Sequence record: KX397373.1
Length of the DNA: 64,000 bases
Direction: 5' to 3' (one strand)
Positions 1,940 to 4,487 of the stretch are shown here, in pieces (position 1 is the first letter of the stretch; every line of letters starts with the position of its first letter). A program made the position numbers and the translations under genes. The notes beneath the pieces were generated by a model. The model did not search any database. It was not told the origin of the DNA and saw only the letters and a list, made by a program, of their open reading frames with translations.

Positions 1940-2770
1940 ATGAAAAAGCTTTTGGTAGGTTTGTTGGCAGTCCTGGCATTCTCCGCTCACGCTGCTGATG
2001 TTACCATTACGACGGGCCAGCAAGGTCTGACGTACAACGCCACGTACGGCGTGAATCTTGCCAGTGCTCTGAATGAGTTCGGCAACAAGTCCACTGTGGT
2101 ACCGTCGAAAGGTTCCCTGGACAACCTGGACAAAGTTGCTGCCGGTTCTGCGCAGATTGGTTTTACCCAGGCAGACGCTTTCCAGTTCTGGCGCTCACAG
2201 CATCCGAACGAAGCACAGAACGTAGACATCGTTGGCCAGCTGGGTGACGAGTGTGTCTTCGTGGCTGTCAAGAAAGAAGGTAAGGTTGGCGGTGAAGCCG
2301 ATCTGAAAGAAGGCATTAAGATTGCGGTCGGTGAACCCGACTCTGGTTCTTACGCCAGTTGGCAATACCTGCAAGGTTTGGTGAAGCAATACGCAAAAGC
2401 TGAAACCTACGCGAAAGGCGGTATCCGTTCTCTGTCCAAAGTGGCCACGGGTGAATACGACGCGTTCATGTGGGTAAGCGCACCGGGCAAGAATAACAAA
2501 TTCCTCGAAGCAGTTAACCAGGATAGCTCTGGTCTGAAACTCATCGACATGAACAACTGGAACGTCAACGATAAACTGCCTAACGGGCAAGCAGTCTACG
2601 AGAAGAAGTCTGCTAAAGTTGATAACTCTGCGTGGTTCGGTGGTGATGTGAAAGTGCCGTGCACCAAAACGTTGGTGGTTGCTAATACCGACGCCGGTGA
2701 CGAACTGCTGGAAGCCGTTTCTACTATCCTCCTCAAGAATGCTCCACGCATCATGGGGACGGGTAAGTAA
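1940..2770 (+). CDS. TAXI-family TRAP solute-binding protein with signal peptide
   Basis: Signal peptide MKKLLVGLLAVLAFSAHA; TITTG..G.TY, SKGSLDNL and IGFTQAD motifs; strong codon bias. Confidence 0.85.
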   Translation: MKKLLVGLLAVLAFSAHAADVTITTGQQGLTYNATYGVNLASALNEFGNKSTVVPSKGSLDNLDKVAAGSAQIGFTQADAFQFWRSQHPNEAQNVDIVGQLGDECVFVAVKKEGKVGGEADLKEGIKIAVGEPDSGSYASWQYLQGLVKQYAKAETYAKGGIRSLSKVATGEYDAFMWVSAPGKNNKFLEAVNQDSSGLKLIDMNNWNVNDKLPNGQAVYEKKSAKVDNSAWFGGDVKVPCTKTLVVANTDAGDELLEAVSTILLKNAPRIMGTGK

Positions 2771-3357
2771 GTGCTGACGTGTAAAGGGCACTGGCTGGGC
2801 TGATAACCCCGCCGGGACGGTTTCATCTGAGGGGTTGGGTGAAGTGAAGAAACGTGGCACACCAATAAGTCCACGTTAACCGGATTGCATAAAGCACTAC
2901 CTGCGGGTAGGCAATCCTGCCGTCTAACATTATTCGGTGATTAAACATGGAAGAGTTGTTCAGAGCGTTTCTGTACCGAATGGGTACCTGGTTGAAAGAC
3001 CTCAAGCTCTGGAAGCTCGATTGCTATTGGTTATCAGGATGTGGGACTGAACGCCATAAACCTGTTTTAGGACGAGAGTCCTCAACCCAGGCGAAGTCCG
3101 TTACGGACGAAGGTCAAGCACCGGCCCATTAAGCCGACTCGCTGACATAGGCAACCTTCACCCCACAATCTGAATGTAACTGATGGGATTGAGTTCCCAG
3201 TGTGAAAGAGTAGCAGTGTGCTACTGAGTTCCTCCCTGGGACTGCTGAGCAGCGAGGGAATAGGGCCAAGAAGAAAGTAAGTAGGGTTGGTGCTTGGAGG
3301 CGCTAAGACCGGGGGATACCCTGGCTCAGAAGAAGAAGTCCATCAACCTCACTTAAT
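2771..3357 (+). ncRNA. candidate large structured ncRNA (~590 nt)
   Basis: No credible ORF. Hairpins include 2851-57/2871-77, 2882-88/2911-17, 3069-73/3078-82 with a GAGA loop and 3209-15/3219-25; two crossing 8-bp long-range helices. Strand inferred from the adjacent tRNAs. Confidence 0.6.
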
Positions 3358-3433
3358 GCGAGTATAGCTCAGCTGGTAGAGCTTCTGGTTCCCAACCAGA
3401 CGGTCGTGAGTTCGAATCTCATTGCTCGCTCCA
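3358..3433 (+). tRNA. trnG: tRNA-Gly(CCC)
   Basis: Anticodon arm TCTGG-TTCCCAA-CCAGA, U73, CCA. Confidence 0.92.
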
Positions 3434-3542
3434 ACAAAATCAATGACTTATAGCGATTTCCCCATTTCGCTACAAGACAACCTAAGTATATGTAAAACAA
3501 CCAAGACGTGTGCGAATTCGAAGTTGAGTTCTCAGACGTATT

Positions 3543-4290: not shown

Positions 4291-4296
4291 AACAAT

Positions 4297-4416
4297 AGTC
4301 GCCTAGCTCAAGATTAGAGCACACCTTACGACCAATACTGACCAACACGCACCGCGGTGCAATAATGGCGGTGGCGTGATGTGCGGTTACCGGTTCAAGT
4401 CCGGTGGTGACTTCCC
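4297..4416 (+). ncRNA. tRNA-like RNA with a 52-nt segment in place of the anticodon loop
   Basis: Intact acceptor AGTCGCC/GGTGACT, D stem GCTC/GAGC and T arm ACCGG-TTCAAGT-CCGGT; ends TCCC, not CCA. Confidence 0.65.
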
Positions 4417-4422
4417 TATAAT

Positions 4423-4487
4423 GGCTACTCCCGGTCGGTCTGGGGTCGTCTGTAAAGACGAGGATGGTTCAAATCCGTCAGTGGCAA
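4423..4487 (+). ncRNA. minimal or degenerate tRNA-like element (GTA in a 6-nt loop)
   Basis: GCTACT/AGTGGC stem, TCGTC-TGTAAA-GACGA arm, 1-nt variable region, GATGG-TTCAAAT-CCGTC T arm; no CCA. Confidence 0.45.

Follow-up and report, generated by a model that had tools for sequence, protein, structure and literature searches.

A conserved structured RNA with an embedded small reading frame in the tRNA gene region of SPN3US-like jumbo phages

Large conserved structured RNAs are, to our knowledge, rare, and we know of no function for most of them (GOLLD, ROOL, OLE and raiA). Here we describe a ~560-nucleotide (nt) element of Erwinia phage vB_EamM_Stratton (Erskinevirus EaH2), at 2791–3350 on the plus strand, that combines a conserved fold with a 61-codon open reading frame (ORF); the window analysed is 64,000 nt of record KX397373.1, with coordinates identical to those of the phage. 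Several described systems share parts of this layout. Dual-function RNAs (RNAIII/hld, SgrS/SgrT, SR1/SR1P and AzuCR) are at once a structured RNA and the mRNA of a peptide of 26–60 amino acids (aa); they act by antisense pairing with target mRNAs and keep the ORF in a separate segment, RNAIII having 514 nt and 14 hairpins. Type I toxin mRNAs (hok/sok, aapA1/IsoA1 and tisB/istR) hold a small ORF in a compact fold, with structure at the ribosome-binding site (RBS) limiting translation. Operator pseudoknots and pseudoknotted riboswitches (rpsO/S15, T4 gene 32, SAM-II and preQ1-II) pair a loop just upstream of the Shine–Dalgarno (SD) sequence. T4 species 1 and 2 (rnaC and rnaD) are stable RNAs of 120–140 nt, lacking an ORF, that lie among phage tRNA genes and are matured together with them. 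GOLLD and ROOL exceed 500 nt, contain many helices and pseudoknots, are borne by phages and prophages and are often tRNA-adjacent (PMC5737381, PMC12286853); they are non-coding and assemble as RNA-only homo-oligomeric cages (PMC12286853).

Judged by layout, the nearest functional analogues of the Stratton element would be the dual-function RNAs (RNAIII/hld) and the compactly folded type I toxin mRNAs. As in the former, a single element, near RNAIII in size, holds a conserved structure and a small ORF; unlike them, it is phage-borne and its codons join the conserved fold (contact K2, hairpins H1–H3 and helices A–C, described below). As in the latter, the small ORF sits in a covariation-supported mRNA fold, but the element has no toxin family, no conserved helix closing 5′ to 3′ end, and many invariant loops. 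Its pseudoknot PK1 closes a folded domain at the RBS, as in the rpsO/S15, T4 gene 32, SAM-II and preQ1-II systems, although that domain, ~145 nt long and built around a junction, fits no riboswitch family and is followed by a large conserved 3′ part without counterpart there. An internal ORF preceded by a pseudoknot, a stop codon in a hairpin, more structure after it and a tRNA context all recall tmRNA, yet the element lacks a tRNA-like domain and a degradation-tag-like C terminus, and its ORF has an AUG after GGUGAU. Compared with T4 species 1 and 2 it is larger, bears an ORF and has no sequence relation. Size, ornateness and a tRNA-adjacent phage setting are shared with GOLLD and ROOL, whose kinship a sequence-only reading of this stretch had suggested; in contrast to both, the element carries a conserved ORF with a coding signature, hosts and phage types differ, and no covariance model connects them.

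Searches for a known family were negative throughout. Rfam 15 cmscan of the window (gathering threshold), of 2650–3450 (E ≤ 10) and of six homologous loci (E ≤ 1) returned tRNAs only; a mir-278 hit at E = 3.3 in the permissive scan was discarded as noise. Covariance models of RNase P RNA, group I and II introns, 6S, SRP, Y RNA-like and riboswitch classes gave no match, and, with flanking genes that differ between phages, the element does not qualify as a host-gene intron. ARAGORN found no tmRNA in the window, and the Rfam tmRNA model was also negative. No description of the element was found in the literature on SPN3US non-coding RNA (ncRNA) and RNA-seq, GOLLD/ROOL, phage structured RNAs and dual-function RNAs; it could be present, unremarked, among the 10,006 viral candidates of one RNA survey (PMC10690425). 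These comparisons indicate that the element is new as a family, and each new family of large RNAs is a lead to new RNA biochemistry.

Using blastn against phage genomes, we found the element in 52 phage records, all ~240-kb SPN3US-like jumbo phages, with Erwinia, Salmonella, E. coli and Proteus as hosts (genera Erskinevirus, Wellingtonvirus, Machinavirus and Seoulvirus). Uncultured members of the same ~240-kb type came from motif scans of IMG/VR and JGI/ENA metagenomes and from small-protein look-ups. Thirty distinct full-length sequences, as little as ~50% identical in pairwise comparison, group at 97% identity into 18 clusters. Phage, metagenome and genome scans revealed no credible homologue outside SPN3US-like jumbo phages, and a search of 5,426 E. 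coli genomes for a host counterpart found nothing similar. The sequence-only reading had likewise placed the element in enterobacterial jumbo phages, in a tRNA gene region and outside any named family, and all three statements hold. Among its carriers are jumbo phages of Erwinia, Salmonella and E. coli that can be cultured and are genetically tractable.

Several groups of matches were set aside. A 14-base motif scan of IMG/VR gave about 100 chance loci, nhmmer upholding the jumbo-phage loci only, and a 5′-domain pattern scan added about 30 more chance loci. Some 58 metagenome contigs (~58, mostly human gut) and 8 Clostridia genomes, sharing a fixed 63-nt spacing, are nhmmer-negative and ascribed to chance; a ninth genome match, an alphaproteobacterial metagenome-assembled genome, is nhmmer-negative too. 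These gut metagenome and Clostridia loci (L170–L247) are chance hits of a 22-base degenerate motif to a widespread conserved coding sequence of gut Lachnospiraceae, which nhmmer finds unrelated to the phage RNA.

A single sequence tells little here, and relatives are therefore needed to decide on a fold: the folding energy of one sequence is mildly unusual on either strand (z = −3.1 for plus and −2.9 for minus versus shuffles). Across the homologues, blocks of invariant bases alternate with helices rich in compensatory changes. Separate alignments covered the 5′ part (A2) and the 3′ part (A1), while two more spanned the whole element (A3 and A5, the latter of 18 sequences); RNAalifold reports compensatory changes in 18 of 26 pairs of the 5′ domain and 16 of 45 in the 3′ core. 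A hand-written consensus model of 95 pairs was then counted on A5 against 500 shuffles. In the model 91.0% of cells are paired (79.7% in shuffles), 41 of the 95 pairs change on both sides (28 in shuffles) and 210 cells are double changes (70 in shuffles), with a covariation score of 0.365 versus at most 0.106 when the partners are slid. None of the 500 shuffles matches the observed paired cells, both-sided pairs, double-change cells or score. The model pairs hold 145 G:U cells against 24 A:C cells, an excess that identifies the plus strand as the folded strand. Thus, the alignment statistics indicate that 2791–3350 (+) is a conserved, clade-restricted, multi-domain structured RNA of ~560 nt with a pseudoknotted 5′ domain. 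A large multi-helix RNA with a real pseudoknot had been proposed from the sequence alone, and covariation on 18 homologues bears this out, the pseudoknot being PK1 and not the one proposed.

The long-range helices on which that proposal was built fare differently. The complementary segments exist and are perfectly Watson–Crick paired, with the exception of the supposed closing helix 2828–37/3344–51, which contains a 2-nt bulge. Perfect 8-bp complements occur at chance frequency (4 observed versus 2.5 ± 1.9 in dinucleotide shuffles, 27% of which reach 4). The helix 2837–44/3156–63 is paired in 52% of cells, not above shuffles; 2837–44 (GGGTGAAG) pairs locally in the Pv hairpin, and the bases of its putative partner CTTCACCC fall partly within the 3′ strand of helix A, which covaries locally. 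The closing helix is paired in 41% of cells across homologues, again not above shuffles. The crossing helix 3115–22/3289–96 is paired in 92% of cells but shows no covariation, every variant breaking the pairing: complementarity persists in most members only through the near-invariance of both strands. Mismatches without compensation are found in Machina, the ChrisDB group and L167, the last of which compensates the competing local helix B instead, and the complement is absent from the diverged 3′ domain of Kwan-type members. Two local hairpins, 2961–66/3006–11 (53% of cells paired) and 2973–77/2983–87 (50%), were also dropped, being neither conserved nor above shuffles; both lie within the fast-evolving N-terminal coding part. 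On this evidence the long-range architecture first proposed is wrong.

The stretch had been described as ORF-poor. That description is misleading, as one 61-aa ORF is conserved in every homologue:

2947–3132, plus strand: ORF of 61 codons, AUG at 2947, UAA at 3130–3132

It is the sole ORF conserved on either strand. Wherever the stop motif was located in a homologue, an AUG-started frame of 55–69 codons ends at the same invariant UAA; the length differences are whole codons only, and the AUG stands at the equivalent place in all. In-frame stops are absent from 20 of 20 distinct sequences, compared with 1–4 in each other frame. Substitution patterns split the ORF in two. The N-terminal block has a proportion of synonymous differences (pS) of 0.52 and of non-synonymous differences (pN) of 0.23, giving a pN/pS of 0.44 in frame versus 0.91 and 1.53 in control frames, and individual pairs reach ratios of non-synonymous to synonymous divergence (dN/dS, Jukes–Cantor corrected) down to 0.10. 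This indicates that codons 1 to ~30 are under protein-level selection. The 3′ half has a pS of ~0.11 and a pN of ~0.10 (pN/pS 0.93 in frame versus 0.78 and 1.73 in control frames), synonymous divergence in the N-terminal block being five times as high. Conserved at all codon positions without frame preference, codons ~30–61 are thus constrained at the nucleotide level. From codon 23 on, the ORF takes part in the fold, through K2 and then H1–H3 and helices A–C. AlphaFold2 predicts one helix over residues 2–29 (pLDDT 74–81) followed by a disordered tail, a split that matches the substitution pattern.

The sequence-only reading had named conservation of ORF 2947–3132 with a coding signature as an outcome that would refute it, and the homologues show just this; a purely non-coding interpretation of the stretch is not supported. 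The RNA structure stands nonetheless, because ORF and fold overlap and covary. An ornate RNA acting in trans as a scaffold, ribozyme or multimer, roles also suggested for GOLLD and ROOL, its frame open as a by-product, would account for the strong covariation and the many invariant loop nucleotides, for the missing coding signature in the ORF 3′ half, for an SD that is weak in several clades and for the fact that most genome annotations leave the ORF uncalled. We nevertheless hold it to be distinctly unlikely, given the in-frame pN/pS of the N-terminal block relative to its control frames, and a frame that survives codon-sized length changes across clades with an AUG in all and no in-frame stop. 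The interleaved coding frame makes the element more interesting than a plain ncRNA.

The peptides share an invariant Trp and the motif R-x-W-x-[LF]-x-x-[YV]-[WR]-[LF]-[ST]-G-x-G. The predicted helix is amphipathic and charged, with hydrophobic positions in heptad-like spacing. The family is limited to the SPN3US-like phage clade: its PHROGs match is phrog_26199, with no function assigned, and small-protein searches returned the same phage clade only (7 and 4 clusters). A match to the 1192-aa repeat protein P0009, confined to its low-complexity tail, was set aside.

Upstream of the main AUG, Kwan-type members carry a small additional frame. In L003 (1420–1440, aligned to ~2935–2949), the conserved UCGAUGAG motif gives rise to an upstream ORF of 4 codons, AUGAGCGAAACAUGA, and the stop of this ORF shares bases with the main start codon (AUGA). 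In ChrisDB and SNUABM4, the same UCGAUGAG AUG is in frame with the main ORF and extends its N terminus.

The 5′ domain of the model precedes the ORF and is made up of the following parts:

2791–2799/2807–2815, plus strand: stem of hairpin P1, with a 7-nt loop CUGAUAA at 2800–2806 (pattern Y-U-R-R-U-R-N)
2816–2820 GACGG/2920–2924 CCGUC, plus strand: helix P0, closing a junction (2816–2924) that encloses Pv, P2 and P3; hand-read in A5
2821–2846, plus strand: Pv, a lineage-specific variable hairpin with stem 2821–2827/2838–2844, including GGGTGAAG
2851–2857/2871–2877, plus strand: hairpin P2, with a conserved 13-nt loop containing ACC..UAAGU
2882–2888/2911–2917 and 2897–2901/2906–10, plus strand: helices P3a and P3b, with a conserved internal loop A(C/U)AAAGCA
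2802–2805 GAUA/2931–2934 UAUU, plus strand: PK1, pairing of the P1 loop with the RBS region, from covariation

In P1, three GGG/CCC pairs are invariant and 5 of 6 outer pairs show compensatory changes. P0 is present in 18 of 18 sequences, its outer pair occurring as G-C, A-U, U-A, C-G or G-U and its second pair as A-U, C-G or G-U. Pv is missing in the ChrisDB group and SPN3US, while Kwan, SNUABM11 and Machina have another local hairpin there. Compensatory changes are seen in 5 of 7 pairs of P2 (pair types per position include UA, CG, GC and AU) and in 8 of 12 pairs of P3a/P3b, where 91–94% of cells are paired. P2, P3a and P3b had been recognized as local hairpins from the sequence alone, as had 3209–25 and 3309–24 further downstream, and all five are upheld by compensatory changes.

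PK1 brings the P1 loop to the start of translation. Its 3′ strand lies 1 nt upstream of a Shine–Dalgarno-like GGUGAU (2936–2941) and 12 nt upstream of the AUG. In total 98.6% of its cells are paired, and two positions switch between A-U and G-C (13/5 and 10/7), the switches falling in at least three independent lineages. Predicted openness is slightly higher in the translation-initiation region than elsewhere (P(unpaired) 0.46 versus 0.37), which is weak evidence that the modelled start region is compatible with translation.

Other partners for the loops of this domain were considered. In the Erskine/Wellington clade only, the P1 loop CTGATAACC (2800–2808) has a perfect 9-bp complement, GGTTATCAG (3029–3037, ORF codons 28–31), in some members with a mismatch at one position; an alternative conformer in competition with PK1 is one possibility, chance the other. 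Further candidate tertiary pairs would join J2/3 AGCC or the P2-loop AGUC to GGYU at 3029–32, and the P1 loop to 3025–28. A candidate pairing of UCUGA 3169–73 with UCAGA 3326–30 is contradicted by SNUABM4, Caitlin and SPAsTU in A5.

The remainder of the model begins within the ORF and extends well beyond its stop codon:

3015–3019/3190–3194, plus strand: contact K2, ORF bases GCUCG (codons 23–25) with the loop of hairpin D
3035–38/3060–63, 3069–73/3078–82 and 3096–3100/3104–3108, plus strand: hairpins H1–H3, within the ORF 3′ half
3109–3114/3154–3159, plus strand: helix A
3117–3119/3141–3143, plus strand: helix B
3122–3125/3133–3136, plus strand: helix C, whose loop holds the invariant stop UAA
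3165–3173, plus strand: invariant single strand ACAAUCUGA
3184–3188/3195–3199, plus strand: hairpin D, invariant, whose loop UUGAGU forms K2
3209–3214/3220–3225, plus strand: hairpin E, loop AGUGU
3226–3270, plus strand: variable module F, with at least three alternative hairpin types swapped between phages
3283–3292/3341–3350, 3293–95/3336–38, 3303–04/3328–29, 3306–07/3325–26 and 3309–12/3321–24, plus strand: 3′ domain G, a long irregular hairpin

K2 joins the coding frame to the 3′ part. It is paired in 97.8% of cells, with one position being CG in 8 and UA in 8 sequences, a U-G intermediate in SPAsTU and two independent events. That position is the third base of the Leu/Phe codon 3016–3018, and its changes are synonymous. 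Because the D loop changes in step with these synonymous third bases, the same nucleotides are subject to coding and to structural constraint; an ORF whose synonymous sites covary with an RNA loop is a natural example, and a clean one, of protein and RNA-structure constraints that overlap.

The shape of H1–H3 is clade-dependent, with compensatory changes within clades (GUCCG/CGGAC versus GUCUA/UAGAC, for example); the hairpins proposed from sequence at 3069–82 and 3096–3108 are therefore conserved with compensatory changes, if less cleanly aligned. Helix A, checked sequence by sequence, switches between GAAGGU/ACCUUC, ACAGGC/GCCUGU and AUAGGU/GCCUGU. Helix B changes from AGC/GCU to UGC/GCA in L167, and helix C from G-C to A-U in 3 sequences. 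Hairpin D, also among those proposed (3184–99), is invariant and hence always paired, but devoid of compensatory changes; ACAAU and UGGGAUU..GUUCC are unchanged across 18 sequences. Compensatory changes occur in 3 of 5 pairs of hairpin E (CG 8/UA 8 and AU 8/GC 8). Domain G has them in 7 of 21 pairs, with 96–98% of cells paired; its internal loops are UGGAG and a purine run GAAGAAGAAG, and the domain as a whole is the most conserved part of the element. The sequences ACAAUCUGA, UGGGAUUGAGUUCC and ACAAAGCAC form invariant unpaired loops.

A short motif, UAAGNCC or UAAGCCG, recurs at 2866–2872 (P2 loop), 3130–3136 (loop C, its UAA being the ORF stop) and 3304–3310 (3′ domain). All three copies are placed where a loop enters a helix; the motif may be a repeated binding or tertiary motif.

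Conservation along the element is mosaic. Between Stratton and Machina, identity is 50% in the 5′ domain, 38% in the ORF N terminus, 55% in the core and 94% in the 3′ domain, compared with 75% in the adjacent gene for a TAXI-family protein. Across clades the 3′ domain keeps 79–94% identity while the ORF N terminus keeps 29–46% and the TAXI gene 75%, pointing to an unusually strong constraint on the 3′ domain sequence. This pattern bears on a conventional explanation, that of an ordinary small-protein gene with long structured untranslated regions (UTRs) that stabilize or process the mRNA, the RNA as such being without a separate function. Phage mRNAs commonly have structured UTRs, the coding signature is present, and the region looks polycistronic and lacks terminators. 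Such a gene would scarcely be expected to show a 3′ domain that outdoes both the ORF N terminus and the TAXI gene in identity, or invariant unpaired loops (ACAAUCUGA, UGGGAUUGAGUUCC and ACAAAGCAC), and the combination of a junction with a pseudoknot and a tertiary contact reaching into the ORF exceeds the needs of stabilizer hairpins. We consider this explanation unlikely, though not far-fetched.

In module F, Stratton and Asesino share 31% identity, amid neighbouring parts that are 86–99% identical. Its types are scattered irrespective of relatedness (Stratton, Kwan and SNUABM11 share one; Asesino, SPN3US, L127 and L134 another). In L003 (Kwan), L074 and L109 (Wellington), it is the 3′ domain that is strongly diverged (46% identical), with all 10 bp of the closing helix and a comparable layout retained, the remainder of the element being ~89% identical to L133. 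Independence of F types from relatedness, together with the diverged Kwan-type 3′ domain, suggests that modules are exchanged between phages, and the distribution of module F points to swapping by recombination.

Taken with the coding signature, the fold leads us to regard as probable, by a modest measure, that the element is a bifunctional translation-coupled RNA: an autonomous gene that would serve both as a ~560-nt structured RNA and as the mRNA of a 61-aa peptide. Compact fold and translation would then be mutually exclusive, as a ribosome reading to the UAA would have to melt K2, H1–H3 and A–C. The 5′ pseudoknot domain would gate the RBS as an operator or riboswitch-like element, yielding a tightly rationed small peptide, and untranslated molecules would persist as stable folded RNA. 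About 220 nt (~220) of conserved structure lie 3′ of the ORF stop, ending in domain G. The invariant loops and this 3′ domain may bind a sequence-specific partner shared by infections of Erwinia, Salmonella, E. coli and Proteus; candidates are the ribosome or translation machinery, an RNA chaperone, an RNase or a conserved phage protein. The 3′ end probably arises by processing with the downstream tRNAs, which in Stratton would be through RNase P cleavage at 3357/3358. So viewed, the element offers a directly testable system for competition between translation and RNA folding. More tentatively, and with a likelihood we place somewhat short of even, it may represent a new class in which ORF codons are structural parts of an ornate fold, and RNA and its own peptide cooperate or alternate, for example as a ribonucleoprotein that encodes its own peptide part, or as a switch coupled to translation that targets the translation or tRNA machinery while nucleus-forming jumbo phages infect the cell.

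Several observations weigh against the bifunctional reading. The SD is of uneven strength: Stratton, Asesino and SNUABM11 have a good one, that of Seoulvirus and the ChrisDB group being weak or distant. A Pfam search with the peptide gave no match, leaving no recognizable family beyond phrog_26199. PK1 and K2 surfaced when every pair of columns was scanned for covarying stacks and were then checked sequence by sequence; chosen from many candidates, they have post hoc statistics (98.1% paired versus 91.4%, 20 double-change cells versus 7.4, reached by none of 500 shuffles) that are consequently optimistic. K2 is supported by a single covarying position, and while PK1 is on a par with the undisputed helices, K2 is less secure. 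In member L129 (IMGVR_UViG_3300011741_000001), PK1 (A-C), K2 (C-A) and helix A (two mismatches) are broken and the ORF is intact; L129 may be a decaying or differently folded copy.

The small ORF and its RBS pseudoknot also call to mind a type I toxin–antitoxin-like module, in which a harmful peptide would be made from an mRNA kept inert until processing or antisense release. A hydrophobic amphipathic helix, a covarying mRNA fold and a pseudoknot beside the RBS would suit it, and on the minus strand P3b followed by UGCUUUAUG is weakly terminator-like. The helix is, however, charged and not transmembrane, Pfam gives no match to Hok or another toxin family, and the hok-typical 5′–3′ closing helix is not conserved (the pairing counted above). 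No sigma-70-type promoter or conserved antisense gene was found on the minus strand, in a scan that leaves phage-specific promoters uncovered; the G:U excess places the conserved pairs on the plus strand, and the carriers are strictly lytic phages. Among the explanations considered, we rate this the least probable.

In Stratton, the element lies between a TAXI-family solute-receptor-like gene (1940–2770, +) and tRNA-Gly (3358–3433, +), the first in a series of co-oriented tRNA genes; the adjoining tRNA-Gly, starting at 3358, had been noted from the sequence. The element is single-copy within the window. GenBank annotates no feature at Stratton 2771–3357, and assorted small ORFs on either strand are called in the equivalent stretch of related genomes. 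The annotation can thus be corrected, as most genomes show these ~590 nt empty or with spurious ORFs. All carriers have the element inside the tRNA gene region, in the orientation of the tRNA genes, with a TAXI gene or a gp2-like ORF upstream. The downstream neighbour varies: a tRNA at 7 nt, a ~200-nt spacer (SPN3US), a ParB-like ORF (Machina), an HNH ORF (L166) or a 108-aa ORF (L167), tRNA-Gly adjoining directly in Stratton and Asesino. With immediate neighbours differing between phages, the element behaves as an autonomous module. It may be an unrecognized factor in tRNA or translation handling by SPN3US-like phages.

This setting invites a further explanation, a cis-acting leader of the tRNA array that would control attenuation, antitermination or processing, perhaps sensing, via the conserved Trp/Tyr codons, decoding by tRNAs that the phage itself encodes. 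The element is always upstream of, and co-oriented with, tRNA genes, its ORF ends within a structured region as in leader-peptide systems, and no terminator-like site was found on the plus strand between it and the tRNAs. A scan found no sigma-70-type promoter or intrinsic terminator bounding the element. Against a leader stand the varying downstream neighbour, the failure to find a conserved terminator/antiterminator alternative, and a 60-aa peptide under protein-level selection, atypical of an attenuator leader. SPN3US-like jumbo phages also encode their own RNA polymerases (PMC7598289), a further point against it. We hold a leader function to be markedly improbable, and continue to favour a bifunctional RNA.

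Two other features of the tRNA region were recorded. At 4291–4487, a 197-nt interruption of the tRNA array, GenBank has STRATTON_17, a 120-nt tRNA-Ile(aat) at 4297–4416; ARAGORN and Rfam find no tRNA there, and a T-arm-like GGTTCAAATCC lies near 4465, with a sub-threshold tRNA-Sec-like match (16 bits). The interval may hold the remains of a tRNA or a small RNA of another kind. Amid the tRNA genes further upstream, 1003–1227 and 1326–1568 encode tandem paralogous small proteins (MNLYLLKRTDKYGHEEF... and MNLYLLERTDSVGYDEF...), with tRNA-Trp before the first and tRNA-Cys after the second.

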